Positions 3,582-44,600 of a stretch of DNA of 64,000 nucleotides are shown here, piece after piece. The stretch spans positions 16,802,001 to 16,866,000 of the forward strand of contig CP075493.1 of assembly GCA_021613535.1 (NCBI GenBank), given 5' to 3'. Under the pieces are notes generated by a model. The model ran no database searches. It was not told the DNA's origin and saw only the letters and a list, made by a program, of their open reading frames with translations. The number at the start of each line of letters is the position of its first letter. The first letter of the stretch is position 1. The DNA comes from Adineta vaga (lineage: Eukaryota; Animalia; Rotifera). The position numbers were made by a program, and so were the translations under genes.

Positions 3582-4258
3582 GTTAGAAATGGAAATGAGA
3601 AAGATCTCAAATTTTTTTTTCTTTTTATAAAAAAGAGTTAGGCATGAAATCATGATGACAGAATTTGTTTCCATCTCGTAGAATTGGAAGTAACTGAATG
3701 CCTACTTTATAATGTTTTTTTAACGTGAAATAATTTTGTAGTATATTCAGAACAAAAGAAATCGAGGATAAAACAAATGTAGATTAGTTTAATGTGACAA
3801 AATCATGAATAGTTTCTTTTCAAATTCTTTCGGTATCTTATTAGTTATTCAAGCAAACAACTTCACACTTCGATAATCCATAAAGATTGATGAGAAACAA
3901 ATTATCAGATATGAAGAACTTGAACTTAATTATTATTTTCAAAGACATTTCTCGGTCATATATGACGAGTGAATTTGCGAAAAAGTACATTTTTTAACTC
4001 ACATTATGTTTAATTATGAATCTTTTTTGTGAATGAATGTATAGATTATATCTTCTTCTTCTATCGTCGTACATGTATTCGATTATTCACAGTTATTCGT
4101 GTAACTATTGTCTTGATCAATCCTTGATACGAAGTTAATATATTCTTGACTCTTCGTCGAAGTGTTGCTAAAGATGAAAGAAAAACGAACGGAAAAAGGT
4201 CGTGTGAGATAATGTTAGCGTCATCCACTGGACCCTTTATTCTCAGATTTCTCTTTCT

Positions 4259-22052: not shown

Positions 22053-23634
22053 ATGTCTATGAACATGGAAACTGTACTATTGCAGAAGATACAAAAGCAG
22101 GAAACGATGCTTCTGTTGTCATCAGGTACCATTCCAATCACTGGACGTTCGCAGAGCATCACTTCTTTTGCTCAACAACGTATCTGGTTCGATGAAAAAT
22201 TGTATCGCGATGCTGCGACATCATCAGTTACAAACAATCTTTTATTACCCTTAGTGATCAAGGATGGCTCAATGTCAATTGAACGTATTCGCTCAGCAGT
22301 AGTTACTGTTCTCGAAAGACATATGGTTCTTCGAACAGCCATTCACTTTGATAATGACTGTGGAAAGCTGATACAACAGGTGCAACCTATTGTGGATAAT
22401 TATAGTTATTCCTTTGAACTAACAAAGAAAAATCTTCACGCTCAAAATGAGATCGATGATTTACTCAAAAATGAACGTATCAGTCATTTTGCTAAATTAG
22501 AACAAGGTTTGGTTGTCCGTTGTCAGCTAGTAAAGATAAGATTTGATGACGACATGGAAAGTCTTCATCCAGATGATCTTATTATTTTTATATTTCACCA
22601 CATTGCTTTTGATTATAATTCTGCTGGCTCATTTATTACTGCATTTACGCGAGCATATGATCAAACAGAATGCAATATTGCGAAATTACAATATATTGAT
22701 TTTACTCAATATGAAGATCAACAATTAATCAATGGAACTGAAAATTCTGAGATAGGAAGAGCTCAACAGTTTTGGTCCAGAATGATCGATGATTATAATT
22801 TAAATGAAAAATATCCACTGCCAATCACTTCTATGCTCAGAAACAAAATACGCTCTGGACGAGCCTACAGCACATCGTTTGTTCTGGATTCAAATTTAGT
22901 GGAAGCTCAAATTAAATTTGCAGTCTCACATAATGTGTCTATGTTTCATCTTGGACTAGCATGTTATTTTCTTCTTATCTATGAATTAAATGATGGTAGC
23001 ATCAGTGATTTATGTGTGGCTTGCCCTACAGAAAATCGACCAGTAGTCGATACGAAATCAATGATTGGTACATTTGCGAATATATTACCATATCGTATTC
23101 GAATCAATGCAAATGATAGTTTCATTAACTTGGTAAAGCAGATTTGTCAATTGGACACGGATATTCTTAATCATTTTCAACTGCCATACCAGCAGATCAC
23201 AAGTGGAAACAAGGACTTACGTTCAAGAAAGATTCCATTTCATTTTTCTCATGATTCAGTTTGCTCATTTCCAACAGATGAAATGACCTTAAAATCAAGA
23301 ACAAAGGATGCAACATTAAGTTTATATACTGATCGTCCATGGCTGCATGTTACCGGCGTTGCTTTCAACGATTTTACGCTGAAAATGATCCATAATCAGT
23401 CTAGTCGAACGACTTCCTGTATCTTTGAATGTACAGCTGATTGTTATGATGAAATGGCAACATCCAGTATCGGTCAACACTTTCAAAATCTTCTACTATA
23501 TATTTTCGCTAAGAAAACCGAAACTAATGGATTCGATCCAACACGTGAGAAAATTGGAAATCTTTCTCCTCTGCAGATAGTCGTTCCAAATTTGTCGGAA
23601 GTCTCTCAACATCTACCGAATGTAACAGAAACAA
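22053..23634 (+). CDS. NRPS first coding exon: N-terminal (starter-like) condensation domain C1
   Basis: SFAQQRIWF and HHIAFDYNS. Phase-1 donor gtaagt at 23635, matching acceptor ending at 25168. Confidence 0.85.
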
Positions 23635-26600
23635 GTAAGTTTTTCGAAGAGAATTGCTCCAAACTCCTCGCTTATAAATCTATATGAGTTAAAACTTATA
23701 TATAGCGACAAAAAGACTACAATAAGATTAAGCATCCTTGCCTGCAGCAAAAGAAGTGTAAATTCGCCTAAATTCTTCCAGTAATAGAAGTTCAAGCCCT
23801 ATCCCCCTAATCAATAAGCTACCCAAAAATTCGTGAATGATTGGTAAAAATAGGAGGTCTGGGCTTTATATTACGTACGTGTTTGTTTTTTCTTATGTTC
23901 ATTACTGTTTGGAGAAAAGAAGATTATTGTTCTCTTTTTAATGGTATACACATGGGTAATGTTATTTCATGTTTTTTTCTTTCGTATTCTCAAGATCAAT
24001 TTAGGCAAAGATTAGGAATAAAAACTCCTTTTTTTTTAGAAACAACACGAAATATCGCAAGGAAAACATTTTCGACTTTTTTGAATGTTCACGACTGTAA
24101 AAAAGACAGTTTCTTATAAGATACGACATCGGCGAGATTTGCATTAATTGTGGTTCAATTTTTATTGTAATTTTATGAGGAAGAGTATACGGGAGGATGG
24201 AAACCGACAATCCCAGATTCAGTCACGGAAACTGTTCGCTCTACTACTTTGAAATTTAGCAATACTTTGTTATAGTATACATTTTGAGTACGTTCTAGAT
24301 ACAAAAATACAAAATTTAAGAATTTCCCGGTGCATATCTAGAACGGTTCTGACCTAACTAAAAGATCCCATAATATGACTACAGATCCAAACATGTAAAT
24401 AAATTACATGTACCTTTCTATTCATACTAGAACATATCTATTTCAATACAGGTCATCTGAGATCGTAAAGGGAAGGCTGAAGATGATCATGACTGCTAGA
24501 AATAACAAAAAATACTTGATTGAGTAGTAACTATATACAAAATCATATAGCATACAGAATAATTGTATTGAACTAGATATTTTACTCGTATGAATATACA
24601 TAAGAGTTTGATTAGAGGGTGTAGGTGTGAATATGAATATCAGTGTGGCTCCTATACTCTCACCTTCACCCACACGCACACCCACCCTCAAGATGAAGTG
24701 TACGACGATTGGCAAAACCATTTAAAACGTGAAAAATTTTATTTATCGAATCATCATTTTCCTACTTAGGAGGTACGAGTTTCTGGAAGTCTTTACTCTT
24801 CATCATCTAAAATACACTCAGAATGTATATAGAAAAACCAAATACAAATTTATAAAGAGAGTTGGAAGGCGAATCTTTCAGTAAAAAAATAGGTTGATAG
24901 CTTCTCAATTCAGTAAAATAATTAGAAAATAAAATGCGACATTCCTCATGAAACACCTGTTAATACGTAATTTGTTGGGTAGTTTTGTAGTATTACATAA
25001 AGCCCTAATAAAGATTTGTGAAGTATTTACGGAATTGTTGCGACAGTTTCGTAGTATTACGTGACACTAAAAAAGATTTCAACTGTATTGGAAATGTTGA
25101 AATCCTTTTTAGTCTCTATAATCTAAGTTTTTTTTGCAGTGTATAAAGATAGTAATTGATTATTCCAGGCCCAGCATCATATATGCAAACTAAAATTTGG
25201 TACGATGAACGACGCCGTTTCGATTCCGATGAAGTACAAATAGCAACTTACAATATGCCATTTCTTTATCGTCCTTTCCGTTGTCATACTTTGTCAGCAG
25301 GACAGCTTCGTCATGCTCTTCAACTCATTATCAACAAACATCAATCACTTCGTACATCATTTGTCTTCGACACTGCTAAGAATTTGCTCACACAGCAGAT
25401 CATCGATCAGAAAGCTAACAAAGACAACACGTCTTTAATCATCGAAAGCATCTATGAAACCGATGAACAATTAACTAATATCATGCATGATGAACAGACT
25501 AACTCTGAACTCTTCGATATGTCTCAAGGTCTTGTATTTCGATGTCATATTGTATATTATAAAGAAATCTCCGGAAATGGTCTAATTGGTGAAAAAGATG
25601 CTCTTATTTTCAATTTTCATCATGCTTCATTCGACCTTCCATCAATGGACGTGTTTATTGATGATCTTAATCAAGCTTACACAACAAATCAACTACGAAC
25701 CAATGACGACACTTCGCTACGTTATTTAAATTGTAAATATAAATCATTCGCATACTTACTTTTCATGAAATATCGTTTTTTCTCTGTTTTGTTTAGATGC
25801 TCTCATTGAACAACAAATAACAATGCATGGTGCTAGTATATTTTGGCTTGATACACTTCGTGGATACAATATTGATCAATCTCTACCATTACCATTTGAT
25901 CGGTATCGCCTTTCGACTGAGCCTCGAACAGATCGTGGAACATCTATTATTTTCACTTTTGATCAAGATTTGTCACGTAGTTTTCTTGCTTATGCATTAT
26001 CAAACAATATCAAACCTGAATATCTGACACTAACTACTTATTATGCATTTTTATTCAAGTTAACAAACGGAGAAAAAGATTTGTGTATTGGAATGAATAC
26101 AGATGGGAGATATAGAGATGAATTAAAATCAGTGATTGGAATGTTTGGTAATGTTACTCCATTACGATGTCAATTAGATCCTTCTTGGTCTTTCTCTCAA
26201 TCAACCAATTCTGTTTGTGAAATGGTAACAAATTGTATGAGATATTCTTATTTTCCACTTCAACGTATTCTGAATCAACATTCAAATACTTCAAAACTTA
26301 CATTTCCTGATACATTTTTCGAATATCAGTCTATTGAAAATGAAATGAACAAGAATAAAATAAGTATCGGTGGTTGTTATTTGCATGCTATGCCTTTCTC
26401 AATTAAAACTAGTGAACATGAAATAATGAGTGAACATGATTTTATTCTTAGTATTAAACATGATATGAATATTAATCAACTTTCATGTACAATTAAAGCA
26501 TCACGCGATTTGTTTAATGTAGAAACAATTGATAAAATCTCTCAACGATTTCATGTAATGCTAAATCAATTATTTATATCTGGTGACATTCAAATGAAGA

Positions 26601-29600
26601 AGTCACTCTATGAATTGTCATTGCTAGCATCAGATGAACGATTACTAATGCAATCAATCAATGATACACAAGTATTACTTCCTCCTGTCGTTTGTATACA
26701 TCATCAATTTGTTTATCAAGCAATGAAATATTCACAAAAACTAGCTGTTGAACTTGATGAACAGTCTTTGACATATTCTGAACTTTTACATTATACACAA
26801 TTGTTATCTATGAATCTTTTAAATAATCATTTTTTCACTCCAGGTAAAATTATATGTCAATGTGTAAAGGAAAGTATATCAATGGTGAGTTGAGCGACGG
26901 GATGATTATTTAATTCAGATGAATATTATTGTTTATTAGGTAATTGGTATGATAGCAATCGAGATGGTTGGCAATGTCTATTGTCCCCTTTCACCTCAAG
27001 ATCCTCTAGACAGATTGCATTCATTAATCGAACAAACTCATTGTTGTCTAGTTCTTGTTCACTCAATGACACGAAACAAGTTTGACGATGATTATCTCAC
27101 ATTCAACATTGATACAACGATTAGCATTGACAAGATCGTGAATAATGATTATCTCGATCGGCTGTCGAGTATAAAAGTCACTCCGGAAAGTGTTGCGTAT
27201 GCGGTCTTCACTAGTGGTTCAACCGGTACTCCGAAAGCTGTGAGTTCATGATCCTTTTTATGTAATTGTATGCTATCAATGCCACTCTCTTTGTAGCCTC
27301 AAGTGCGTCATAGAAATTTTACATGCTATATTCATTCACTCATGTTGGCCACTTCTCTCAGCGACATGAACATAGTGATACAATTGGCTGGCTGTTCTTT
27401 TGATTCTCATATCGATGAGATTCTAGGAACACTGATTACTGGCTCCACACTTATCATGCTCCGGCCCGAAGGAAATATGGATTTTGAATACATAGCTACA
27501 GTGTTGACGAAAACGAAGCTCACACACTTGGCTTGTGTACCGAGTTTTTTCGATGGTCTTCTTCTTTTTCTTAGAAATAACGATCGCATAGCTGCTCTGG
27601 AATGCCTTCAGTCACTTTGTAGTGGCGGTTAGTATTTTTTAAAATCAGCTGTGTCCGCATGAAATTTCTGTAATCCTTTTGTTGTAGGTGAAGCTCTTTC
27701 TGTTAAACTGGCAAGTCTTCTCAAAGTCAGTGTGTCTCACAATTGTCAGGTTCTAAATGTCTACGGACCAGCTGAGGCAACAATTGGTTGTACTTCTTAT
27801 CTGATTGATAATACATCCAGCATAATGAGTATACCTATCGGACGACTACTGTCCAACTATACTTGTTTTATTTTCGATGAATTTTCCCAACCTGTCATTG
27901 TAAATCAAGAAGGTGAGCTGCTCGTTGGTGGTGAGGGTATCTTTGTTGGCTATCTTGGCCGGGAAGATTTAAACGACAAAGTACTTTTCGATTTCAACGG
28001 GTCCATATACTATCGTACAGGTGATCTAGTTAAAATAGATAACAATGGTCTTCTTTATTATATTGGTCGAAAAGATTTTCAAATTAAATTACATGGGCAA
28101 CGTATTGAACTTGGTGAAATTGAACGGTGTTTACTCAACACATCCATCTCAGCCTGTGTTGTCATTAAGTGGGGAGATGATCATTTAATTGCTTATGTTC
28201 AAAGTTCTACTATTGACGAGAAACAATTACGTGAATATTGTCAATCTCATTTACCACGGCACATGGTTCCATCAATGTTCATTATCCTAAAACAACTACC
28301 GTTAAATAGTAATGGAAAAATAGATCGAAAACGTCTTCCTTCACCTAATTTGTCGTTATTGACTTCGTCATTACCAAGTGCATCTGATATTCCGCTAAGT
28401 CATTTGGAACAACGTGTGCACGATATATGGTGTGAAATTCTGAAATGTGACGGGCGTTATATGGCAACAAACAAAAGCTTCTTTGCTATCGGAGGTCATT
28501 CTCTTTTGTTTATTAAACTATATAATCGCTATCAAACTTTGTTTGAGTTTGACAGTCGTACATTGTCTATTGGTTTATTTCTCCAAGAATCAACTATTAC
28601 CCAACATGCAAAATTATTGGAAGCAGTCACAACTGAAGGTATCCAAACGAAACAAAGGCATACTTCCGATATAAATCAAATTCAAAAGTTTCAACCCTTT
28701 CCTGTTACAGAAATGCAGCAAGCATATCTTATAGGACGAAAAGGTTTTCTTGAACTTGGCCATGTTTCTTGTTTTCACTATGAAGAATATGACTTGCCAT
28801 CAACATTTGATATTGAACAATTGGAGAAAGCATGGAATTATTTAATTCAACGTCATGAAGCGTTACGTATCATCTTTCCATCTAATACAGAACAAAAAAT
28901 TCTCGAAACAGTGCCTTATTACACTATATCTATATTGGATTTAAATGATATTATGACGGTAGAAGAATTATTAAAAGAACGACGAGAACAACTATCACAC
29001 CAAGTTCAACCAGCGAATCAATGGCCACTTTTTAATATCCAGGTGACTTGTTTTAGTATTGATAACGAATACTATAAACGTTTGCATGTCGGTTTGGATT
29101 TTCTCATCCTGGATTTATGGAGTTTAAAGTTAATTATGAATGAATGGAGTCAATTGTATTTTATTCCAAATATTCCTTTGAAAAATATAAATCTTTCTTA
29201 TCGAGACTATATTTTGATTGAACAACAATTTAAAAATACGACTGATTATATAAATGATAGAAAATATTGGATTGATCGTTTAAATTCCTTTCCATTAGGT
29301 CCTAATTTACCATTACAATGTTTGCCAAATGAAATACATATACAAAGACATTGTAGTTCATCTTTAATATTAGACGGACCAATCTGGCAGAAATTAAAAC
29401 AACGTATTATTGATCATAAATTGACATCAGTTAGCTTTTTAGTATCTATTTATGCTATGGTATTATCTAAATGGAGTGAAAACAAACATTTTGCTTTGAA
29501 TTTACCAATTTTTAATCGATCATCTATTCATCCACAAATAAATGATATAACAGGAGATTTTACAACAACTCTATTATTAGAAATCAATCTAACTGAGTCA

Positions 29601-32600
29601 ATTAATTTCGATCAATTCATTAAAATTGTACAAAAACAGTTACGAAATGATCTTGAACATATATCTTACAATGGTGTATCATTTATTCGTGATTTGATGC
29701 AAATACATCAAACAAGAGAAATAATATTACCATTTGTTTTCACATCTGGAATAGATATACGCGATACAAATGAAAATAATATTCAAGAAAATTTTTTTTT
29801 AGATGAATTACTTGTGTATTCGATTAGTCAAACACCACAAGTTTTTCTCGATCACATTGTATTTGAAAAAGATGAACAATTATTAACCAATTGGATTTAT
29901 GTAGAACATTTATTTCCATCAGAAATAATTAATGACATGCATCGTACATTCATTGACTTACTTCAACAATTGGCGTTGTGCGATGATATGTGGTACAAAC
30001 CTCTTTCGATCTCGTTACCAATTAAACAACTAGAGAGAAGAGTCGATTTTAATCAAACGCAATGGAAATCAAATGTCAAAGAACAATTACTTCATTCATT
30101 CGTCATTGAACAAGCTCAGCAAATACCTCAAGCTTGGGCTGTTTGCACTACAAGCCAAAACTTAACATATGAGCAGCTAATGAATCGCGTTTATTCCTTA
30201 GCATATTATTTACAACAACAACATGACATACAATCTAATCAACTAATTGGTATTCTAATGAAAAAAGGTTGGGAACAAGTCGTTGCTTGTTTATCTATTT
30301 TAATCTCAGGTGGTGCTTTTTTACCTTTGGATATTGATTCACCGTATGATCGCCTTTCTTCAGTAATTCAACAAACTAATGTCAACATTATTCTTACACA
30401 ATCTGATTGTCCTCATAAATTTACACATTTAACAACTATTTCAGTTTCAACATTCTCCAATAATAATTATCCTAAACCATTTCCCTTGAAACAACAATTA
30501 TCAACTGATTTAGCTTATGTTATTTATACATCGGGTTCAACTGGTCAACCAAAAGGTGTTATGGTTAGTCATCAAGCTGTTCTAAATACAATTATTGATA
30601 TGAATTCAAGATTAGAAATTTCTTCTAATGATAGAATATTTGCATTATCTCATTTAAATTTTGATTTATCTATTTATGATATATTTGGAATGTTGATCAA
30701 AGGTGGAACTGTCGTTATTCCAGATCATGGACACTATAAAAATCCTAAACATTGGTATGATATGATGATTAAACATCATGTAACTATTTGGAATAGTGTT
30801 CCAATATTAATGCAAATGTTAGTTGAACATTTAAAACAGAATTATAATCAAACACAATTAAGACATATTTTACTAAGTGGTGACTTAATATCATTATCTT
30901 TACCAAAATCAATAAAAAACACATTTGGTGAACAATTAACGATAACAAGTTTGGGTGGTGCAACAGAAGCATCGATTTGGTCAATTGCTTATACATTACC
31001 AAAAACGATTCCACAAGAATGGAAATCAATTCCATATGGATTACCACTAAGAAATCAACATTATTATGTTTATGATACAAATCTTGATGATTGTCCTGAA
31101 TGGGTCAATGGGGAATTATATATTGGTGGTATTAGTCTTGCTCATGGTTATTGGAATGATCGAAAAACTACAGAATTAAGTTTTATAATTCATCCACGGA
31201 CTGGTGAACGTCTTTATCGAACAGGTGATTATGCGAGATTTATTCCTGATAGTTACATTGAATTTATCGGACGAAAAGATTTTCAAGTTAAAATTCATGG
31301 TTATCGAATTGAACTTGGTGAAATTGAATATCATTTACAACAACATCCAGATATTTATCAAGCGATTGTTACTCAAGATAAAAATTCTCAACAGTTAATT
31401 GGATATATTTTACCACAAACACATTCTCATCATCATAATAAATTTGCTCAATTAGAAACTTTAATTACTGATCCTGTTGAACGTACTAATTTTAAACATG
31501 CAAGACATGGAACGAAACATCATTATGCAGGTGAGCAGAGTCTTGTCTTAACAAAACCGAAACTGACAGAAACATTAATCAATTCATACTATGGAAAAAA
31601 AACATATCGACAATTCACAAATGAAATTATTGAAAAATCGAATATTGAATATTTATTCAACAAATGTTGTATTAATAAGAGAAATATCGACCAAATATAT
31701 GAATGTGGTGTCAATTTCGATACTCTTAGTCACTTGTTATCGTTATTAACACCGATCAATATTTCCACTAAATCTTTACCTAAATATCGCTATGCATCAT
31801 ATGAAAGTCTTTATCCTGTTCAAGTATACATTGAACTTTTCACATCCTTACATAATATATCACCTGGTCTCTATTATCATAATCCAGATCAACACACTTT
31901 AGAATTAATTGATACTTATATCAACTGTAAGAATATCAATACACGTCTACATCTTATTGGACGATCATCTGCTATTGCACCTTTATGTGGAAAAACATTA
32001 GCTAGTCAATTTTGTGTGCTAGAAACAGGTTATATTATGGGATTATTGAAACAAGAGGCAATTAAATTAGGATTGATGTTTAAAAGAACTAATCACGATG
32101 AAATGAAAATGTCCACTTTCAACTTAGATCAGAATGATACTCATTATTGCTTCGAACTTTCATCTGTTAATCAATATGTTTCTGATAATGATTATCCGCG
32201 TTGTATTATTTATCAAAAGTTTACTCGTAAGAGCAAAGATCAATGGTTTACTTACGATGAGAAAAATGAAATTGTCATCCCTCTTGAAGTTGAAGAAGCA
32301 ATAATAGAAGACGATATGCCATTGTCCTTTGATACTGATGATCATAACAAAGCCATATTTCATGAATGTCAAATTGCAATTTTTTTCATCGGACAGTCTA
32401 CAGACAGATTAAATACTGGTATAATATCGCACTTATTGATGGATAGTGGTTTGGAAATGAATATTGGTATGTGTCCAATTGGTGTATCGACGAGTTTACC
32501 AATCAATATTCTTAATGCATTAGATATTGCTCGAGTTCGTAATGTTTCGGATAGGCAGAACATATTATTGCATACACTACTCATCGGAAAAGTGACTAAC

Positions 32601-35600
32601 GAACAAAAATATGAACGCACGATTTCAACCGCTAAATCAATGCCAAATTATAATATACTTCTGAAAACATATTTAAATAAAAAACTTCCAACTTATATGA
32701 TACCGTCATACTTTCTGACTGTCGAGGCATTTCCATTAAGTTCAAATGGTAAAGTTGATCGAAAATCATTACCTAAAACATCGATGACAAATTTGCAAAA
32801 AGAAGATACCTATAGAGCACCAAGTACTAAGTTAGAAAAGAAAATTGCAAACATTTGGTATCAGATATTGGGTAAAGATCAATTATCCCATGATTTGAGA
32901 TCAAACAAATGGGATCGATTACCAATAGATACAAATAAACGATTATCTTCAGATCTTTTCCAGTTAAATGCTCCAACATTTTCTCATCAATTGGGTTCAG
33001 CTAGCTTCTTCAGTGTTGGTGGTAACTCTCTTCTACTTCTTCATTTGTATCAACAATACCAATCACTCTTCAATTTTGATCCTGAGATTCTAACGATCCG
33101 ATCATTCTTTGAATATAATACCATAGCTGAACATGTAAAACTACTGCAAACAGTTGTACCACGTGACATTGAACCAATGCAATGGCAAACGCTGCATATT
33201 AATCAAGGTAAGGTATTGAATGTGGTGCGAAGCACAGCGTTTCCGTATTCTTTCCTGAGTTTTCTTTTTACTCAATGTTGTCAACGTACGCGTCAAAAGT
33301 CTTCATTTAATGTCGCGATCATCTGGAGAAACAAAACTTAGCGAAACTGTGTTGAAAGGCGACCCGAAACTAGGAAGATCAAACCGGTTATATCCGTTTT
33401 CTGATGTTCACTAGGGGAGTGTTTGATTTACGAATAGTTCAGGAAAACAACGAAGTTGAAAGAATTTACGCCTCGAGTGCTTAAAATTATGGTAGAAAAC
33501 CTTAACCGTCACCCATTGGAAACAATTATTTTTATATATCTCAGCTGATTGCTAATACTAAATGAGTCATTTAAATAATTAATCAATCAATCAATAGTGC
33601 TCATTAGAAGCAACTTGATAAGTAACAAGAAACGTTCGTCATTTCTACTCACTGGACTCTCGACATCAGAAATTCTTTTTTCTCTCCGCAATCTCTTTCT
33701 TAAGTAGAGGACGTAGATGTTCCTGTGCCTGTCGATAAAATTCAGTAGTAAATACACCACTCACACTCACATCTATCATCCAATAATCAAGTTCATCCCT
33801 CCACCCATGATTTCATCCATCACCCAGATCTATACCCCAGCTTTCATCGATGTTTTTCTGACCTTTGGCCCTGACAGAAATATACGAACAAACTATTTCT
33901 TTTCATAGGACCCTCCTTACAGTCAAGGAAATAATAGAGTTCTTGTAGCAACGGATTTTGTTATGTCAGTACGTTAAATTTTTCGACAATTTCACTCAAC
34001 AGATTCAGTATAATGTAATCTACTTAATAGAATCGGCAGATAGGAAATTCCATCTGTAGACTGTCAAGTGGCTAATGACAGTGTTCTTTTCATGTTCAAC
34101 TGTTGTAACGAACACTCTTTTTTTACAGCACACATCGATTTCTCGATAACCTATGCTTATAGTATCGCATTGTGTAGCCGACTTTTCAATACCATCAAGT
34201 TAGTTCTGAAACATTTTTTGAAGAGAAGCTCAAAACAAAGTTTGACAGAATATTATTTCCGTTATATGTATCCGAACGATTTTTACTCTTATCAAAAATA
34301 CATAAGATATTATGTGCTATTGCTCCACTTTCTTTAGCTCCATTGCCATTGACCACGTATCAATGGAAGAATCAAAGCTATACCTTGCTGATTTCACAGA
34401 TTTATAATACCCATTCTTCTGCTCTCTCTACATAGTATAGGTAAAATAGGAATATCGGTCAAAATATAGGATTTATCAAAAATATAGGAAATATAGGTCG
34501 GTCCGATCCCAGATAATTGTATATTGATTTATTTGCAACATATTAAAATATTCGATGATATAACATTTAGGTCTTGCATCTTTTGCTCAAGAGCGTATCT
34601 TCCTCGATGAACAAGTTCGCTTCTCAAATGAAGTTGCCATCTACAATGAATTATCAGTTCTACGACTTGTTCAAGGTTCATTATCGATCGATCGTTTATT
34701 AAAAGCACTTCGATATATAATAAGCAAACATAATATATTACGATCATCTCTCATTTTTGACAATGAAGATAGTACTTTAAAACAATATGTTACTCAAAAC
34801 CATCTATCATTCTCATTAGTCAATGAACAAACATTTGAAAATGAAAGTGAACTTTTCGATATTATCCATAAAGTTACAAGCAATCCAACTTTATTTAATT
34901 TGTCCGAAGGCCGAGTGTTTCATTGTGAGATTATTCGACAACAGAACTTAACTAATGAAAATAATGATAAGGAATTGATTAGAGAATCCGATGTTGTTAT
35001 ACTGGCTTTTCATCATGCAGCATCTGATCGATCAAGTTTCGCCGTCTTTTTCGAAGATTTGAGTTTTGCTTACAATAATAATAATGACACAACATGGTTT
35101 GAAGATGAGGATTCAATACAATACATTGATTATAGTGTACATGAACGTTTAATGGATATGACATTGTCTCGTGAATTTTGGCATTTTCAACTTGACGGTT
35201 ACAATCCCGAGCGTCCTTTAGCATTGCCAGTTGATCGACATCGTTCATCTGCTGATCAACGATCAGGTTTATCTTCTACAACTTACATATCGTTCAGCAA
35301 AGAAATTTCGAAATCATTTCTCGATTATGCATCTTCACATCAAGTCACACCATTTCAGTTAGGATTGGCTACATTTTATATATTTTTATTCAAGTTAACT
35401 CATGGTCAAACTGATCTATGTGTTTCTTGTCTTAATGCCAATCGATACAGAAATGAAATACAGAATATGTTTGGAATCTTTTTTTCCACATTACCATATC
35501 GATTTCAACTCGACGGTAACTGGTCATTTGATGAAGTTGTAAAACGTGTGCGAGAAATATGTTTATCAATTCTTGAACATTCTCACTATCCAATACAGTC

Positions 35601-38600
35601 TATTTTTGCTAATTTTCATTTCAATCCGTTACATATTCCGTTTGTTCAGTCGACGTTTGATCTTATAACTGTTTCTCCAGAAAACATTAATTTATCTTTA
35701 AACGGCGCAAGTTTAGAAGACGTACCAATGAAACTATCGTCCGAAGTAGCCAAAGTTGATTTCTCGGTTAGATTTGTTTACAATCCAGTTTCGGACGATA
35801 ATCAATTGTCGTGCTCATTCATCGGCTCAAGAGATTTATTTGACCGAACGGCAATTGTAACTATGGGTGTTAGATTAAAACACCTTTTTAACCAACTGTT
35901 TTCATCTGATTCAACTAGTACTTGGATTGATTCAATGTATATGCCTGTCACTAAATTTGATCTCATCTTACCCGAAGAAACCGAAGAAATCAAAAATGTT
36001 GTTTTTTGTCGACAGTCCATTGTTGTTAACGAAGGTATGTTTATGTGCTTTACTGTTGAAATATTTCATATACGTAAGGTACATTTAAATTATGTGGAGT
36101 TTTTATTCTAGGGAAAAAAACTCAAAAATATTATGACAAGCTGTCATCTTTTGAAGAGAACATTATACTTTGACTAGTTTTTACTTTGAGAAGACATTGT
36201 AAAAGATTCTGTCTGTAATTGCTCAATTTATTAGGTTCTTAAAATTGCTGAAGTTACAAAATATCAAATAATCTCGTGCGTAAAACACGAAAGCTTCCTA
36301 AGTCATAAGTTTAATCAAACATTTTGTTGGCTAAAACGTACATAAAATTCCATACTTTTGAGTTGAAACAGCAGCAGCAGTAGGACATACTAACTTGATG
36401 TTCAATGCATTTGAGTTTTATTAAAATATATTATTCAAACGATAGGCATTGAACAACTACTATCGCCATACTTTGTACAAAAGAAATACTACGAATATCA
36501 GCATTTCTCATAATTTTCTCAATAATAGACTAGTTCCGGCATACGATTAAAAATCAAGAGCTATTGATAGAATCGATAATATCCCATTTTTTTAGCATCA
36601 GCATCCTATGCTCAAGCGCGTATTTGGCTTGATGAACAAACTCGTTTCGGTTCTAACAAACCACAAGTAGCAATCTACAATATGCCATTTCTTTATCGTC
36701 TCTCATCCACACATACTTTATCAGTTAAACAATTTTATCAAGCTCTTCAGCTCATTATCACTAAACATCAAGCACTTCGAACATCATTGATCTTTGATTC
36801 AAACAAGAATCAACTCTTACAACGAGTCAATGACTTGAACGATAGTCACAAACCATTGTTTACGTTTACAGAAAGTACTTTTCAAACAAATGAACAACTC
36901 GATGAGATAATGTATGACGAGAAACGCAATTCTCAATATTTCGATCTTACTCAAGGACTTGTCTTTCGATGTCATCTCATTTACTACAAACAAATATCTT
37001 CAAATGATCTTCTTTGTGATAAAGATGTTATTATTTTCAATTTTCATCATGCATTGTTCGATTTTCCATCGATGGATATCTTTCTTCGTGATCTCAATCA
37101 AGCTTATACAACAAATCAACTATCAACTGATGATAACATGAATCTACGATATCTTGACTGTAATGATCAATATTCTTCTTTTCTATTTGATTTCATCTAT
37201 GTGTTTTTGTTCAACTATTTAGACGCTGTTATCGAACAAGAAATGTCAATGACTGGTGCAAGTCTATTTTGGCAAGATGTTCTTTATGATTGTAATTTTG
37301 ATCGATCTTTACCATTACCATTTGATCGACATCGTCTTGCTAATGAATATAATACTGGTCGTGGAACATCTGTCTCTTTTGATTTTGGTGAAGATCTTTC
37401 ACAAGCATTTCTTAATTATTCGTTATTGTACAATATTAACCTTGAATATCTGATACTTTCTTGTTATTATGCTTTCTTATTCAAATTATCAAATGGAGAA
37501 AAAGATCTTTCTATTGGAATTAACATTGATACTCGATCTAGAGATGAACTTAAATCGTTGATCGGAATATTCCAAAATGTCATTCCATTACGATGTCAAT
37601 TAGATCCTCATTGGTCTTTTCATCAATTAATTATATACTCTCAAGAGATAATGAGAAATAGTTTGAAATATTCATATTTTCCTCTTCAACGCATTCTCAA
37701 TCAACATGTCAATAGTTCAAGACCTGCATTTCTTGATATATTCTTTGAATTTCAATCAAATCAAAACAAATCTTGTAAGAATGAGATTATCATTGATGAT
37801 GTTCATCTCTATCCTATTTCCTATTCGAATCAAATCAATAGAAAGGAAGTTGTGAATAAATATGATTTCTCTCTTATTATTCAACATGATTCGAATATTA
37901 ATCAACTATCATGTACAATTAATGCATCACTTGATCTATTCAATGAAAACACAATTGACAAAAGTACACAACGATTTCATTTTATGTTGCAACAATTATT
38001 TAGATCTACCGATGAATGGATGAAGAAACCAATCTATGAATTATCATTCATATTGTCAAATGAAAGACTACTCGTGGAATCTTTGAATAACACACAAATA
38101 TTATTTCCTTCTTCCACTTGTATACATCATGAATTTGTTTTTCAGGCAATGAATTATTCACAAAAACTAGCAATTGAACTTGATGAACAATCTCTAACTT
38201 ATTCTGAACTTTTACATTATGTTCAATTGTTTGCTATTGATCTAATAGACAATCTATCATTCCAGGTGACATTGTTTGTCAATGTGTAGAACGAAGTCTA
38301 TCGATGGTAGGTTGATTGAAAAGTAATTTTTACTAAAATCGATCGAATATTGATCTTGATTAGGTAATTGGTATAATGGCAATCGAGATGAGTGGTGGTA
38401 TCTATTGTCCATTATCACCTCGAGATCCACCACATCGTTTGTGTGCACTTGTTCAACAAATTCAGAGTTGTCTTGTTCTTGTTCATTGGTCGACAAGAAC
38501 TAAATTCAACGATAATATAATTTCACTTGACATCAGCTCGATGATGGCTGACATTGATATCAAATGTGACATTGATGTCGATCGACTCTCAAATGTGCTA

Positions 38601-41600
38601 GTCACATCGAACAGCGTATCCTACACTATTTTTACAAGTGGTTCAACTGGAACACCGAAAGGAGTAAGTACATTCTACATCTAGTCCACAATCGACAATG
38701 TAACTTTTTCTTTAGGTGCAAATTCGACATTCTAATTTTCTTGGATGTATTCGATCTCTGGTTGATATAGAACTTTTTACATGCAATGATACAATTATTC
38801 AAATGGCAAGTTGTTCGTATGATGTACACGTACAAGAAATCGTAGGAGCACTGATTGCCGGTTCAAGCATTGTGATGCTTCGTTGTCAAGGGAATATGGA
38901 TCTAGAATATGTCCTTAGGGTTTTAGATGAAAAACAAGTTTCATACATGCAAAGTGTTCCAGCTTATTTCAGTAATATGTGTAATTTTCTCCTGGAACAC
39001 AAGTATGAAAATCTTGTTGCATTACGCACAATTGATATCGGAGGTAGAATGATTTTAAAATTTAGTCAGAAAGTGTCAATTTTTATGTTTTCTAGGAGAT
39101 GTTAGTACTATTCAACTGTTCAAGAAATTAACTAGTAATATCTTCGAGAATGTGAGAGTAGTGCATTTATATGGGCCGGCAGAGACAACTGTTGACTCCA
39201 CTTTTCATGTCGTGAATCTTCAAATAGATACAACGCATGTTTCACTCGGATGCCCATTACCTAACTATACGTGTATGATTCTGGATGAATTGTCGCAACC
39301 TGTTGTAATCGATCAAGAAGGTGAGCTAGTTGTTGGAGGAGTAGGTGTCTCTGCAGGATATCTTGGACGTGATGAATTGACTGCGAATGCATTTTTCAAT
39401 TATGACGGATACAAATATTACCGAACAGGTGATCTAGTTCGATTGGGTAGCAATGGTCTTTTATATTATCAAGGAAGAAAAGATCATCAAGTCAAACTTC
39501 ATGGACAACGAATTGAATTAGGAGAAATTGAGCGATGTTTACTTCAGACATCTGTTACAGCTTGTGTTGTCATCAAATGGGGCGACGACCATTTGGTTGC
39601 TTATGTTCAAAGTTCTACTATTGATGAGAAACTATTACGTGATCATTGCCAATCTCATTTACCGTCTCACATGATTCCATCGATGTTCATCGTTCTGGAC
39701 AAACTACCATTGAATGCAAATGGAAAAGTTGATCGGAAACTTCTTCCTGCACCTAATTTCTCTCAACTCTCATCAAAATATCTAAAACATGATGTTCAAA
39801 TTTTAGCACCAAATAGTGAAGTTGAAATTATCATTCATAAGATTTGGTGTGATATTTTTCATCAAAATCAAATCTCAATTGATACAGATATCTTTACTAT
39901 TGGTGGTCATTCACTACTTCTTATGCAGATTAATCAGTTATATAAAGCTGCATTTCATTTGGAAAAAAAAACTTTCTCTATTGCTGATCTTTTCGGACAT
40001 CCAACAATTGTCGGCCATGCTCGCCTCATTGATCAGGCTGCTACTAGAACGATAATGTTGAGTGATCAATGGACATCGTTAAAACTCATTCAAGGTAAAG
40101 AAACAAGCTTTCCTAAATATTATTCTGTTCTACACTTCATTAATATCTAGCTAGAGCATCATTTGCTCAAGAACGTATAATTTTGGATGAACAAATTCGA
40201 TTTTCTTCGAAAGATGACAATAACATGTATATTATTCCATTACTTTATCGTATTTCATCTTCTACTACCAACATATCAATCGTTCGATTGCAACAAGCGC
40301 TTCAGGCTGTCATTATCAAACACAGTATTCTACGAACAGCATTTTATCTTGATACAAATGGTACTATTATGCAACATTGTTTAGATGCACAAGTTATCTT
40401 CGATAAAATGATATCCAATAACGTTTCACTATTAAATGTTTATGATGTAGATAATGATATTCGTAGTATCACTGTGAAAATAAATGAAATCTTAAATAAT
40501 TCTGATTTATTTGATTTATCAAAAGGACGTGTTATTTCTTGCCATATTCTTCGTCAATATCATGCCTACGATGACCGTTCATTCGGCAACGATGATCGAT
40601 TGACGAAAAATGATTTTATTTTATTTAGTATTCATCATTCTGTATTTGATGGAACATCAGTATCAACCTTCTTGCGTGATCTTTATCTTGCTTATGACAA
40701 TAATGCTAACTTACCTATAGATGAGAACATGCTTCAATATGTTGATTATTCAGTTTATGAACGTCTAATAGATATGACATCTTCTCGTGAGTTTTGGCAC
40801 TCTCAATTCCAAGGATATAATATCCAACGTCCCTTATCATGGTCATTTGATCGACATCGATCATCCATTGGTCAGCGATCAGGTTTAGCTTCTATAGTCT
40901 GCATCTCATTCAACAAAGAAGTTGCTTCATCATTTCTTAACTATGCATCTTCACATCAAGTCACACCATTTCAGTTAGGATTGGCTACATTTTATATATT
41001 TTTATTCAAGTTAACTCATGGTCAAACTGATCTATGTGTTACTTCTGTCAATGCTAATCGATATCGAAGTGAATTACAAAATCTCATTGGAATGTTTGTT
41101 TCAACATTACCTTGTCGTCTACAATTAGACTCTCATTGGTCATTCGGTGAAGTTGTAAAACATGTTCGAGAAAAATGTTTATCAATTCTTGAACATTCTC
41201 AATATCCATTACAGCAAATGCTCGCTGATTTCCATCTTAATCAATCAAATGTTCCATTCCTTGAAACAATCTTTGACTTTATTACTTTATCTTCAAACAC
41301 CAGTCTAATATCTTTTGATGGTGCAACCGTTGAACAAGAGTCAGTGGAAGAATTTTTTGAAGTAGCTAGGTTTGACTTTCTAATGAGATTTATTTATGAT
41401 CCAACATCAGGTAATGATGAACTGTCTTGTTCTTTGGTGTGTTCACGTGATTTGTTTGACCAAACAACCATCAAACAAATGGTTCGAAGATTTCAAAATC
41501 TTTTTGAGGAAATTTTTGCGGTGAACTTTAATATTACGTCGATTGAGAAATTTTGTATTATCTTACCAGAGGAAGCAGAAGAAATGCAAACAACAGTCTT

Positions 41601-44600
41601 TTCTAGGCTTGAGAATAATGTCAACGAAGGTACGTGAATAAGTAATAATTTACGACGAATTAACACTTACATCAGAATAAGAATCTATATCGATTATGCA
41701 TAACTAAGACAAGAATATCATGAAGATGATAGATAGCGTTTTTCTTGTCATTGCTTCACCATTAAAGAGTATCTCCAGATTACGTCCTAATATATTCTTA
41801 CCTTTAAAAACTCGGTTGATACTAATCCTGTAGGATGCATATGCAAGTTACAGAATAGAAAGACAGATCTTGCAACATACAGTCGTGGCAATCCAAATGA
41901 TTGTACACTTCCTCTTTTTTCCTCACACCACAGTATTTGTAATTGATGTACACTTCTCTCTCTGCTCTCTTCTTCCTTTCTGTACTCATGTTAGTAGCAG
42001 AAGAAGAACATGCAATTATCATACCATAATACATGGAAGATTATATTACTCTCTTCTCATTTATTCCCTTTTCTGAAAGAAAAGCTTACAGACTCGATAA
42101 AAATTGTTAAAGTTGATTGGTCCAAACCAATCAGAAAATAGCACTGGTTAAATTCGTGAAAACTTATACATAGTCATTAGAATACAATTCACCAAAGGGT
42201 AATCCAGATCGATGAACATGAATCTGCTGTTAGTTTTTTCTTTATAAAAAAATTCTATTACTTTTTTGAGACAAAGTACCATTTTTTTACAAAAAATCTT
42301 TCATATCAGGGTTGAGTGAAAGCCAATCGAGATCAAAGATTATGATTCTCATATTAGCTCTCAATATTATTTTAAGTACTTTATCAATTTTTTGAGGAAG
42401 CAACTGGATCTTAGAAAAATCAAGATTTCTTATAAGCGCTCACTAAAGAGTAATCGAATATGTTATATCTGTATCATGTTTTCGGATGGTGGTTTCTGTT
42501 CAGTGTTTGTTATCAGTCATCATAATAACGCAAACTGTTAATGTGGCGGAAAGAGACAGGAAGAGTAACTAGATTAAAATCAAAATGCTTTTGAAGAAGT
42601 GGGCAAGTGATTTGATTCAAGAGCTGAGGAAATCTTTATTGTATCTTAAGGTTGGTGACCAATATGATTGCATCCTTTGAGTATAGAAACAGCAGCATTG
42701 CGCTGCGTTGATTGTTATTAAGGAATTTATCAGCCATACCGTCTAAAGAAATAAGAATCAACATTATTGAATAATAGCCCGATTGGTGGTTAGTGAACCT
42801 TTCTCTACGAGAACGAGAGTATTCTGTTATTTGTATTTCGCAGATATCGATTGTTTTGTCGTATTGAAAACAGACGAAGACTATCAGAATACTAATGTTA
42901 TGTAATCAGCAGCAATTTATAAAATTGTTGCCTTCTTTCTCAGCTTCTGCTTTACATTTTATGATCGATGGCTTAGAAACGTTTCCTGAATAGTTGAGAT
43001 GAATGCACTTTGTTGTCTCGAAACGTATGTGACATTATAAGGCTGAACATTGAGTGAAAATGACCAGCATATGTCATATTAGATATAAGAGGTATATATA
43101 TTCTTATAAAACATATATAGCTAAAAAGGGTGCTTTTCCTTTTCCGTTTTCTTGCAGCTAAGAAACCTCTGACATCAAAATCATAATTCTAAATCGGTTG
43201 TTTTTTATAAAACTTAATCTGAATTTTCTTTCAGAAAAGGGTCAGCGAATCCCTCGAATGAGCTCAACTTGTTTATATACTAAAACATACATGATATCTT
43301 GATATCACACCCCATATTTATTACGTATCCTCTTCTGTTTACATTAACCCCCATAAATTCCTATCTTATTCCATTATCTCATCGAGTGTTATTAACATTA
43401 TAACCATCATTTTTGGACTTAGATATTTTTATATTAGCGCGCGACTGTACCTTTCCAGGTACCATATAAAGGACGAGAGAAATACAGTATAGCAGCGATT
43501 TCTTATCAAGAATAAAAGTTGATACAAACATATATTCTTATACAGTTCTATACGAACTCAGAAATTGTCACAATAGCATTTTTCAAAATGATGTATTTTT
43601 TAGCAATCGAGAAGAAGAACTCAATATGATGATCATGTAGTATGATTACGTATGAGTGATAAGCGAGCTTGAGAGTGATGATATTATACGGATGCGACAG
43701 GTTGAGTAGCTGTCCTATGCATTTGATTTTCCATTAAGTTAACACTTTGTATGCAGCTAACAAAAAATGTTAGAAGATTTAGCATGAAAAGCTCGATAGT
43801 TTATGAGGCCACTTTTTTTTCAAGTTGCACTTTTTTTGTTTACAAGAATAGGCAAACTTTTGAGCGACTAGATTTCGATACTGCAAAAAAATATTATTAC
43901 TGACCTGCCCATGTACCGCTCCACTCATTTTCGCAAAGTCAGAAAAATAGATGATTATCGCTTTCGTGAAATAGTTTTTATGTTATGAGAAGAATTACTT
44001 ACGGTGTTTTTCTTAATTATTTCGTCAGAGATTATATTAAATTGTTCATTCAGGGAAACTATGGTTAACTTCCTGCGAAAATCAATTTTGACGGAATACA
44101 TAAACATTTTAAAAATGTGATTCCGTCACGAAGGTACAGGTTCCGTCTTTTTCACAGTACTGAAATTCAGTTGTTTCGAGTTTGATTGATATCGTAAACA
44201 AATTGTACGTTTGTAAGAAAGTGATCTTGTGTAAATGGTGGAGTTTTTTCCAGGTCAACCAATCCGATGTTAGATCCGATCGGACACGATGATCCGACGA
44301 AATCCTATCGGATTCCTGGCGACGGAAGCCGAAAGAAATCCGACTGTCGGATTCCAATACACTTCCGATAATATCCGATGAATTAACAATAATCTGCGAA
44401 TACCTAATTTCTTTTGATTTTTCTCGGATTAAAAATCCTTTAATTATATTTTGTATGTTTTCGATTAGAGTTTGACTCGTTTGGATTGGTTTAGGATGGA
44501 AAGCTCATTGTGTAGATTGTATAGTGGCTTAAGGAAGGGATAGATGAACAGTATCGATGGATGAATATGAATTATTATTGTGGGTGTCAGAATCGTATGA

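Follow-up and report, generated by a model that had tools for sequence, protein, structure and literature searches.

The locus considered here raises the question of whether an animal encodes, within its own genome, a synthetase module that would convert cysteine into a thiazoline or a thiazole. The window, a stretch of 64,000 nucleotides from the bdelloid rotifer Adineta vaga, had been described in a sequence-only reading as containing a Cy-A(Cys)-Ox-T module inside a spliced animal NRPS. The features named there, i.e., the heterocyclization (Cy) signatures, the code DLYNLSLIWK and a nitroreductase-like insert between the adenylation motifs A8 and A9, are all present where that reading placed them. 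The domain matches, the GT-AG introns and the evidence for the host support a true Cy-A(Cys)[Ox]-T module within an intron-bearing bdelloid NRPS, as far as sequence can establish it. The gene is laid out as follows, in window coordinates.

22053..23636, + strand: C-type domain C0, the first NRPS exon seen (HHxxxD present; Pfam Condensation 6e-34)
25168..26886, + strand: C-type domain C1 in two exons, ~25168-25733 and ~25798-26886 (Pfam Condensation on both pieces, tblastn of the A. ricciae orthologue P0003, splice sites)
26940..27629, + strand: N-terminal part of A1 in two exons, ~26940-27243 and ~27303-27629 (Pfam AMP-binding on both pieces)
27688..33207, + strand: intron-free exon with the end of A1, T1, Cy, A2[Ox] and T2 (open frame, splice sites)
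28377..28631, + strand: T1 carrier domain (GGHSL, Ser257 at 28500-28502; Pfam PP-binding 3.4e-9)
28680..30050, + strand: Cy heterocyclization domain (matches to solved Cy domains in the PDB, motifs, trees)
30108..31328, + strand: A2 adenylation core (A3 YTSGSTG at 30525; A8 at 31269-31313; Pfam and TIGR01733)
31332..32681, + strand: Ox insert, two-lobed nitroreductase/azoline-oxidase fold (BmdC matches, AF2 model, fold matches, residue table)
32685..32765, + strand: remaining part of the C-terminal subdomain of A2 (A9 LPTYMIP at 32685; A10 NGKVDRK at 32745; Lys1674 at 32751-32753; tblastn)
32907..33161, + strand: T2 carrier domain (GGNSL at 33018, Ser1766 at 33027-33029; partial Pfam PP-binding, 0.0034; tblastn of T1 vs T2)
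33208..34570, + strand: 1.36-kb phase-1 intron separating T2 from the following C-type domain (GTAAGG donor, TTTAG acceptor)
34571..41631, + strand: downstream part with C, C, A3, T3 and C, and short introns (Pfam, tblastn domain map, splice sites)

The C0 exon is collinear with residues 1-524 of P0003, its PDB matches are C domains, and it is followed by a 1.5-kb GT-AG intron of which both donor and acceptor were read. The positions of the A1 introns match those in A3, A4 and A5. The central exon is preceded by an acceptor AG ending at 27687 and followed by a phase-1 donor (G/GTAAGG) after 33207, and it is collinear with A. ricciae P0003/L017 at 73-75% identity. The extent first proposed for the module, 28680-33207, thus ends correctly at the last exon base, but since the exon begins at 27688, position 28680 marks the start of Cy and not of the exon. 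Pfam finds Condensation, AMP-binding and PP-binding domains on the single open frame 27732-33341 (1869 aa). The GGxS serine is kept in both carrier domains, and T2 has about 30 residues more than T1 between A10 and this serine. The 1.36-kb intron is supported by A. steineri P0005, which continues from 33209 directly to 34570. The downstream block ends at a GAAG/GTACGT donor, 3 bases ahead of an in-frame stop, and its C domains match C and not E domains in the PDB.

Such a layout sets limits on the predicted product. Three modules are linked by introns of at most ~1.5 kb; the remainder of the peptide of at least five residues that had been proposed needs a putative 4.3-kb splice, from 41631 to 45955. 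The gene starts with two C-type domains, and therefore the placing of cysteine as residue 2 assumes that nothing is loaded upstream of A1. Two PPTase-family loci are present in the genome.

The identity of the Cy domain is clear from its comparison with solved structures. It matches the Cy domains of BmdB and HMWP2 at 2e-71 and that of EpoB at ~1e-66 to 1e-67, whereas the best ordinary C domain reaches 6e-13 only; in the trees it likewise groups with Cy and not with ordinary C domains. All seven Cy core motifs are readable in the translation, among them PFPVTEMQQAYLIGR at 28695-28739, DFLILDLWS (DxxxxDxxS) at 29097-29123, GDFT at 29553 and SQTPQV at 29826. The Thr/Asp dyad of Cy domains (defined in PMC9547227) corresponds to Thr671 at 29742-29744 (VFTS) and Asp707 at 29850-29852 (TPQVFLDH). 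In GrsA-PheA numbering order, the A2 pocket is composed of D978, L979, Y982, N1021, L1047, S1049, L1074, I1082, W1083 and K1674, that is DLYNLSLIWK. Of these residues, the first nine do not vary among the six A. vaga copies, and almost every A domain linked to Cy in rotifers and bacteria has them too, whereas the A domains of the same bacterial proteins that are not linked to Cy have other codes. By single-domain score, the best solved-structure match of A2 is the A2 domain of BmdB (321 bits). Cysteine would thus be the predicted substrate of A2, and heterocyclization the predicted reaction of Cy.

The oxidase is the part of the module that departs from expectation. The distance from A8 (aa 1180, window 31269) to A9 (aa 1652, window 32685) is 472 aa, compared with 62-70 aa in uninterrupted A domains. 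The comparison with EpoB/MtaD made in the sequence-only reading holds for the domain order and the insertion point; the insert is, however, not of the short type (~240-280 aa) but a two-lobed unit of ~450 aa. It matches BmdC at 2.5e-5 as a single sequence and at 1e-23 as a profile. Its AF2 model (pLDDT 76, pTM 0.77) resembles 3eo7, ThcOx, BmdC and McbC in Foldseek and VIA-align, with the best Z for the tandem nitroreductase 3eo7 (19.9 over 307 residues), followed by ThcOx (16.2) and BmdC (15.8).

Several residues of the active site differ from the family. The segment KKTYRQF at 31596-31616 (family consensus RKSYRQF) has Lys in place of the first FMN-phosphate Arg (Arg1289), and YASYES within 31782-31820 (consensus YASAGS) has YES where BmdC has the FMN-contacting SAG. 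Cys1419 (codon 31986-31988, read identically in independent contigs) replaces the catalytic Tyr (BmdC Y260, McbC Y202; BmdC numbering from PMC8795117), which in the profile alignment falls on the Y of the consensus APLYGK. All 8 long-Ox modules from bacteria keep this Tyr, as do 15 of 17 aligned rotifer inserts; the exceptions are the Cys of the window and a Phe in the paralogue L012. Cys occupies the same position in the A. ricciae orthologue P0003. The insert retains Arg1293 of RxSYR (equal to BmdC R149, which contacts FMN N1/O2, and invariant), LETGY, IGMCPIG at 32463-32483 and LHTLL. The Asn236 loop of BmdC is absent from lobe 1 of all rotifer copies, so that the residue-by-residue transfer from BmdC is imperfect.

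These observations are probably best explained by a thiazoline module with a non-oxidising Ox in a host-encoded NRPS of bacterial origin. From what is known of the family, A2 would adenylate L-cysteine and load it onto T2, and Cy would take the acyl or aminoacyl chain from T1, form the amide with Cys-S-T2 and cyclodehydrate it to a 2-substituted thiazoline via Thr671/Asp707. The Ox would represent a pseudodimer-like FMN-oxidase fold inherited from bacterial modules of the Cy-A[long Ox]-T type. In the orthologue group of A. vaga and A. ricciae it has lost the Tyr acting as catalytic base, with the Arg to Lys change of the FMN-phosphate motif in A. vaga. The intermediate would most likely stay a thiazoline and be handed to the downstream C-A-T modules, and the role left to Ox would be mainly structural, within the A domain. 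Since Cys is found at the catalytic position in both species, thiazoline is the safer part of the thiazol(in)e originally proposed, and the combination of Tyr to Cys with Arg to Lys makes the thiazole doubtful. Ox may still bind FMN, as its retained motifs and purifying selection (dN/dS 0.385) suggest.

Alternatively, the module could be a fully active thiazole former of the EpoB/BmdBC kind, in which Cy makes the thiazoline and Ox with FMN converts it to the thiazole on T2. Bacterial modules of this Cy-A[Ox]-T arrangement produce thiazoles (PMC8795117). Here, Ox has an intact, confidently predicted fold, its dN/dS is not 1, and Arg1293 is preserved. The Tyr to Cys change is also common to two species and could mean a working replacement and not decay; conceivably, the Cys thiol serves as the base and gives the thiazole after all. 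This reading is nevertheless rather unlikely. Elsewhere, the Tyr is found in every bacterial long-Ox module and in 15 of 17 rotifer inserts, the McbC mutant without it (Y202A) accumulates the azoline (PMC6395948), and the changes at SAG and Arg1289 add to its loss. In the paralogue L012, the Tyr and the Arg have independently been replaced by Phe and Ser, respectively, which suggests a relaxed oxidase constraint in the subgroup. Better candidates for thiazole formation would be the A. vaga paralogues elsewhere in the genome, which keep all Ox residues.

The thiazoline reading also has to be weighed against a silent or decaying relic in a subtelomeric, duplication-prone region, without a product and with a frame left intact by recent origin or gene conversion. 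Almost none of the 31-mers of the exon are present in same-species RNA-labelled runs, and the few perfect short contigs from runs of presumed RNA type contain none of the splice joints. The 64-kb window yielded no release domain of either the TE or the R type, gaps of 1.4, 4.3 and 8.6 kb part the exon blocks, and very recent internal duplications reach 98.8% identity over 3.2 kb. The identity to L012 is mosaic, which points to recombination, and the catalytic residues of Ox are eroded. Against this, the exon holds ~1,840 codons without a stop in DNA of 31% GC, and the orthologous 1,893-aa frame of A. ricciae is also open at dS ~0.34-0.50, with dN/dS of 0.19-0.51 in every domain. Cy, A and T have all their catalytic motifs intact, the splice sites are canonical with conserved phase, and bdelloid NRPS clusters are reported to have low baseline, pathogen-induced expression (PMC11258130). 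The relic is therefore an improbable explanation.

Bacterial contamination or an assembly chimera outside the animal genome is very unlikely, although the nearest non-rotifer relatives are bacterial, because spliceosomal GT-AG introns lie within the same gene, the exon has the GC content of its flanks (30-35% across the whole window), A. ricciae has a syntenic exon-intron structure, the best bacterial proteins reach 36-43% identity against 55-74% for proteins from four other bdelloid assemblies, the contig also carries GPCR-like exons at 2512-3674, and sequences from an independent run of 2013 cover 27290-33280 evenly (depth ~58-68) with zero differences. One contig of that run bridges T1 to Cy, and another spans A2 into the intron. 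Homologues occur in A. ricciae, A. steineri and Rotaria, and the NCBI-named A. vaga protein P0015 is the paralogue L013. The host of the NRPS exon is Adineta vaga.

Nested among bacterial Cy domains, the 20 from rotifers group in a single clade (SH-aLRT 100). In a Cy+A tree built without the Ox columns, the 16 rotifer Cy-A modules again form one clade, whose sister (SH-aLRT 97) consists of bacterial modules with the long two-lobed Ox, e.g., that of Pigmentibacter ruber, and not with the short EpoB type. No donor is nameable among the sampled bacteria. On balance, the NRPS appears to have been acquired from bacteria; it is now intron-bearing, host-like in composition and conserved across bdelloid genera.

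The horizontal acquisition of bdelloid NRPSs, also pointed out in the sequence-only reading, has been published: Nowell et al. 2024 (PMC11258130) and Suring et al. 2023 (PMC10531068) described NRPS/PKS clusters of this origin, ~40 of them in A. vaga, many subtelomeric, intron-bearing and of low baseline expression. The contig of the window measures 18.1 Mb, and the window is located 1.3 Mb from its end. The novelty is thus narrower than that reading implied. The main texts of both papers make no mention of heterocyclization, thiazol(in)e or oxidase domains, no paper on Cy or thiazole modules in bdelloid NRPSs was found, and NCBI holds the homologous proteins as 'unnamed protein product'.

Among the known systems, indigoidine synthetase (IndC/BpsA) is similar by description in its large A8-A9 Ox, which is pseudodimeric, as if the two subunits of a BmdC dimer were fused (PMC8795117), but IndC is without Cy, activates Gln and oxidises a piperidinedione. 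EpoB and MtaD (Cy-A[Ox]-PCP; epothilone, myxothiazol) have the domain order, the A8-A9 insertion point and the Cys code in common with the window. The short embedded bacterial Ox, however, is one nitroreductase unit with an A8-A9 distance of 309-349 aa in the aligned inserts, compared with two lobes and 466-480 aa in rotifers; the EpoB insert is described as smaller than the pseudodimeric IndC insert (PMC8795117). The bacillamide synthetase BmdB (A-PCP-Cy-A-PCP-C) and its oxidase BmdC (PDB 7ly4, 7ly7, 5t3e) give the best solved matches for Cy (2e-71), A (321 bits) and the oxidase (profile 1e-23, VIA Z 15.8). Both Cy domains have the Thr/Asp dyad and lack the helper Gln, and both oxidases have the RxSxR FMN motif. 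BmdC, however, is a protein of its own, dimeric and equipped with an RRE-like domain. The Ox of the window is part of the A domain, inserted between A8 and A9; it comprises two lobes, the first of which is missing the Asn236 loop, and Cys takes the place of Tyr260. The bacterial Cy-A[long Ox]-T modules, found, e.g., in the Pigmentibacter ruber NRPS WP_158996978.1 and in proteins of Vibrio profundum and of one gammaproteobacterial MAG, differ in being prokaryotic and intron-less, in keeping the Tyr, and in an identity to the window of only ~36-43%. Their Ox aligns full length with that of the window in one stretch at 36% identity; their A8-A9 distance is 415-483 aa, and RKSYRxF, KYxYxSAGSLYPV, PLYG and IGxCPIG are common to these modules and those of rotifers.

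The exon under study belongs to a series of NRPS pieces which occupy 22053 to at least 54855 on the + strand and resume at 63446, continuing to the window edge, separated by short GT-AG introns, with a GC content of 30–35% across the whole window. The features on which the following description depends are these:

27688-33207, + strand: exon encoding the end of the first adenylation domain (A1), the carrier domain T1, the Cy domain, the second adenylation domain (A2) with its oxidase-like insert (Ox), and the carrier domain T2
27732-33341, + strand: open frame of this exon, 1,869 aa counted from the first start codon
28680-30050, + strand: Cy stretch compared with solved structures
31986-31988, + strand: cysteine codon at the oxidase active-site position
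32766-33017, + strand: part of T2 between A10 and its GGNSL motif

Exons were searched singly, so domain assignments refer to individual exons and not to the joined spliced protein. In the 1,869-aa frame, Pfam recognizes AMP-binding_C, PP-binding, Condensation, AMP-binding, and a second, weak PP-binding domain. The domain order is Cy-A-T, with the Ox inserted between motifs A8 and A9. The sequence-only reading had placed a thiazoline- or thiazole-forming Cy-A(Cys)-Ox-T module at 28680-33207. All of its sequence strings were found at their coordinates, and its end point stands, since a GTAAGG donor directly follows this final base of the exon, but 28680 is the start of the Cy domain and the exon begins upstream of it. 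The carrier sites are GGHSL at aa 254 (T1) and GGNSL at aa 1763 (T2); T2 matches the Pfam PP-binding family partially, with 18 bits at a cut-off of 20.8. Relative to T1, T4, and T5, the stretch from A10 to its GGNSL serine is longer by about 30 residues, and resemblance to the resident T domains is confined to the C-terminal half (about 50% identity vs 34% overall). This pattern fits a junction inside the T domain at which the Cy-A[Ox] block would have been attached. The PPTase family PF01648 is represented by two loci in the A. vaga assembly. An exon-by-exon search of the genome with a 53-position model found no MbtH-like partner, which is weak evidence.

The possibility that the segment is a contaminant or a chimeric join, which the sequence-only reading had named as fatal to its claim, is very unlikely on the following evidence. 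Named homologues occur in A. steineri, A. ricciae, A. vaga, and Rotaria sp. with 55–74% identity, and the best bacterial proteins reach 36–43%. Exon order is shared with the A. ricciae orthologue, whose T1-Cy-A2[Ox]-T2 exon is likewise intron-free. Finally, an independent A. vaga run from 2013 tiles 27290-33280 at a depth of about 58–68 without a single difference; the passage from T1 into Cy is bridged by one of its contigs, and a second extends from A2 across Ox and T2 and into the intron. Upstream of the A. ricciae orthologue, a gene (L017:1-1749, minus strand, contig CAJNOJ010000413.1) encodes arylsulfotransferase and PLP-dependent decarboxylase (Pyridoxal_deC) domains. The latter recalls BmdA of the bacillamide pathway; no counterpart of this gene was found in the A. 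vaga window.

Almost none of the exon's sequence words are present in the RNA-labelled A. vaga runs. Three runs of uncertain type and with labels of other organisms yield a few perfect contigs of 151–357 nt at a depth of 2–11, and no splice joints occur in these contigs. Bdelloid NRPS clusters are described as having low baseline expression and being induced by a pathogen (PMC11258130).

The Cy domain carries DxxxxD(xxS) in place of HHxxxDG (DFLILDLWS at aa 456, window 29097), and HHxxxD is kept in all eight C-type stretches of the window that were checked. When the Cy stretch is compared with the PDB, eight distinct solved Cy-containing sequences match at 1e-71 to 1e-50, including BmdB and HMWP2 (2e-71), EpoB (1e-66), and HMWP2-Cy2, PchE, and FmoA3 (1e-50 to 1e-55), and the top ordinary C domain reaches just 6e-13. 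Thr671 in VFTS and Asp707 in TPQVFLDH correspond to the Thr and Asp described as the putative cyclodehydration dyad (T1830/D1862 in HMWP2-Cy2) (PMC9547227). Like BmdB, the domain lacks the helper Gln. A tree of 69 domains places the 20 rotifer Cy domains in a single clade (SH-aLRT 100) nested within bacterial Cy, and the gene's own C domains are separated from Cy by a branch of 3.77 substitutions per site. The domain therefore does not group with ordinary LCL C domains, the outcome that would have spoken against the earlier assignment. The Cy of the named A. vaga protein P0015 forms a row in this tree identical to that of the A. vaga paralogue L013. By motif, similarity, and dyad, the Cy domain is a member of the NRPS heterocyclization domains, and the formation of a thiazoline is predicted.

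The substrate prediction depends on A2, which matches TIGR01733 at 7e-156 and contains the core motifs A3–A10. Its top solved structure by single-domain score is the Cys-activating A domain of BmdB. The ten pocket positions by PheA numbering read DLYNLSLIWK, the first nine being taken from an alignment of 42 A domains. In the Stachelhaus scheme this is the established cysteine code, and A2 is accordingly described as a predicted cysteine-activating domain. The nine-position code does not vary among the six A. vaga copies and hardly varies among Cy-linked A domains from rotifers and bacteria; the neighbouring A domains of the same bacterial proteins carry unrelated codes. The A1 code, read by eye from separate exons as approximately DSDACGVIGK, matches no assignable code.

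The insert in A2 is large. The distance from A8 (aa 1180) to A9 (aa 1652) is 472 residues, compared with 62–70 in plain A domains, and the insert itself comprises two lobes and about 450 aa. Its matches as a single sequence are faint (BmdC 2.5e-5, TIGR03605 1.4e-5, PF00881 0.22), and it falls short of the curated family thresholds (PF00881 12 bits at a cut-off of 23.5, TIGR03605 24.6 bits at a cut-off of 78.4). A profile of 25 inserts, in turn, finds BmdC at 1e-23. The AlphaFold (AF2) model of the insert (pLDDT 76, pTM 0.77) matches BmdC, ThcOx, McbC, and nitroreductases, with a Foldseek value of 9e-8 for BmdC and VIA-align Z scores of 15–20 for 3eo7, ThcOx, BmdC, and McbC. By profile search and fold, the insert is clearly homologous to azoline oxidases of the nitroreductase superfamily despite its sub-threshold family scores. 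Two lobes are recognized because the top match, the tandem nitroreductase 3eo7 (Z 19.9, 307 residues), spans model residues 53–443, whereas BmdC and ThcOx cover only residues of about 63–303, that is, the first lobe. In HMMER alignments, the C-terminal IGxCxIG...H.L.G part of BmdC aligns to both lobes.

Six short bacterial embedded Ox domains first suggested that the Ox expansions (+26 aa and +130 aa) were a rotifer innovation; this was ruled out by full-length long bacterial Ox domains which form the sister group. An exhaustive HMMER search recovered bacterial Ox domains aligning over the full length in one stretch, from Pigmentibacter ruber (WP_158996978.1, 36% identity), a gammaproteobacterial MAG, and Vibrio profundum. 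Such long-Ox bacterial modules have an A8–A9 spacing of 415–483 aa and motifs as in rotifers. In a Cy+A tree built without the Ox columns, 16 rotifer modules form one clade (SH-aLRT 100), sister to the long-Ox bacterial modules (SH-aLRT 97), so the module was acquired whole.

The active site of the oxidase bears on the nature of the product. In BmdC, the FMN ligands are R145, R146, S147, R149, N236, and G294, and Tyr260 is a conserved active-site residue (PMC8795117). The index of the PDB sequence equals the paper numbering plus two, which places Y260 on the Tyr of the family consensus APLYGK. The residue aligned with BmdC Y260 and McbC Y202, the conserved catalytic-base Tyr, is Cys1419 (APLCGK) in the window, and its codon is confirmed by independent contigs. 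The same position is Tyr in 8/8 bacterial long-Ox modules and in 15 of the 17 aligned rotifer inserts; Cys also occurs in the A. ricciae orthologue (P0003), and Phe in the A. vaga paralogue L012 (C1:17.96 Mb). The FMN motif reads KKTYRQF vs the consensus RKSYRQF (RRSxR in BmdC). Its last Arg is kept, the first, otherwise invariant Arg is replaced by Lys, and Ser by Thr, both conservative changes; a further segment reads YASYES vs YASAGS.

The dN/dS against A. ricciae is 0.385 for Ox, near that of Cy (0.28) and A2 (0.31), which counts against simple decay of the insert. A Y202A mutant of McbC halts at the azoline (PMC6395948). Judged from its residues, the oxidase chemistry was probably lost or altered in the orthologue group of the window with the insert retained, and a thiazoline is thus the more likely predicted product, with thiazole holding a distinctly smaller share. 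Every compared oxidase residue (FMN1 motif, SAG segment, catalytic Tyr, and IGxCPIG) is kept in three A. vaga copies, at C5:10.19 Mb and in the tandem pair at C1:8.5-21 kb.

At least six close copies exist in A. vaga, including one tandem Cy-A[Ox]-T-Cy-A[Ox]-T pair, and homologues occur in Adineta and Rotaria. Our tentative view, held a little below even confidence, is that these constitute a bdelloid family of Cy-A(Cys)[Ox]-T modules of one bacterial origin, spliced and duplicated, which if expressed would yield thiazoline or thiazole, possibly bis-azole, peptides from nuclear genes, with paralogues tuned to thiazoline where the Ox Tyr is lost or to thiazole where the Ox is intact. The presence of the oxidase Tyr in some paralogues and its loss in others offers a natural experiment in which the role of this residue in embedded NRPS Ox domains is testable.

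Several observations concern individual copies. The tandem pair (L015 and L016; G000:C1:8500-21000, minus strand) lies near the start of the window's own contig in a single long open frame of 3,293 aa and is a candidate bis-thiazole former, because its Ox catalytic residues are all intact. Identity between the window exon and its nearest paralogue, L012 (G000:C1:17963500-17970500), is mosaic: about 80% in Cy and the A2 core (dS 0.31–0.47) vs 53% in Ox and 48% in T2 (dS 0.94–1.34), a pattern suggestive of exchange between paralogous modules by recombination or gene conversion. A distant Cy-like domain with 32% identity (L007; G000:C3:6822635-6823930, minus strand) lies inside an uninterrupted frame of 7,164 aa, a very large intron-less NRPS-like gene.

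Along the window, the domains are arranged as C-C-A1-T1-Cy-A2[Ox]-T2 / C-C-A3-T3-C / C-A4-T4-C-C-A5-T5 / C..., and introns of at most about 1.5 kb join the pieces up to 41631. A perfect donor (GAAG/GTACGT) stands at this position, with a stop three bases further on, and an acceptor lies ahead of the next C domain at 45954; the T/C phase-1 pattern repeats at 54808 and 63446. The two gaps, 41637-45943 (4.3 kb) and 54856-63445 (8.6 kb), contain no ORF of 90 aa or more, and each lies between a conserved T/C-type splice donor and an acceptor that matches it. Long introns, which may carry inserted elements, and spacers between genes are both possible readings of these gaps. The gap from T2 to the next C domain is 7.4 kb in A. 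ricciae vs 1.36 kb in the window. A single giant gene is possible, and the previously proposed peptide of at least five residues is conditional on it. No TE or R release domain was seen in the window.

Near-identical C-A-T duplications, introns included, occur within the gene: 36590-39762 vs 51312-54488 (98.8% over 3.2 kb), and 34521-35598 vs 49485-50563 and 34546-35124 vs 63422-64000 (96–97% over 0.6–1.1 kb). These duplications are very recent. As modules 3 and 5 are nearly identical, assembly collapse or expansion could alter the downstream module counts; the window contains the Cy-A[Ox] exon only once. Tandem C-C pairs follow T2 and T4 and also precede A1 (34571-38286, 40183-47616, 49535-52975), and the C domain of T3 and the next C lie on opposite sides of the 4.3-kb gap. 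The first member of a pair carries HHAASDRSS or HHSVFDGTS and the second HHALFDFPS. The C domains after T2, T3, and T4 were suspected by position to be epimerases; this reading is rejected, since their PDB matches, like those of the first member of each pair, are C and not E domains, and all have HHxxxD. Elsewhere in the window, an ORF of 1,308 aa (7177-11103, minus strand), unusually long for DNA of 30% GC, matches no Pfam family at E≤0.01.

Bdelloid NRPS/PKS clusters are already published (PMC11258130, PMC10531068) and have been linked to resistance against a fungal pathogen (PMC11258130). The main texts of both papers contain no mention of heterocyclization, thiazol(in)e, or oxidase domains, and a full-text search for rotifer or Adineta together with thiazole or heterocyclization found nothing relevant. 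The rotifer homologue proteins are present, unnamed, in public databases. The module leads to a prediction traceable by MS: a Cys-derived heterocycle with a shift of −18 Da on cyclodehydration and of another −2 Da where oxidation follows.

Thiazoline and thiazole rings are a hallmark of siderophores and antibiotics from bacteria, including yersiniabactin, pyochelin, bacillamide, epothilone, and bleomycin. We know of no animal that makes them from its own genes; if the reading is true, this would be, to our knowledge, the first case of an animal genome encoding azol(in)e NRPS chemistry. The earlier comparison with EpoB-type thiazole modules holds for the order Cy-A-T with the Ox between A8 and A9, but not for the oxidase itself. 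The EpoB type has a short, single-unit Ox, whereas that of the window is long and two-lobed, of about 450 aa, and lacks the catalytic Tyr. The two-lobed long Ox marks a distinct bacterial module type, inherited as a unit by rotifers, and what is added to prior knowledge is a module of this long-Ox bacterial type in which the catalytic Tyr was lost in the window lineage.
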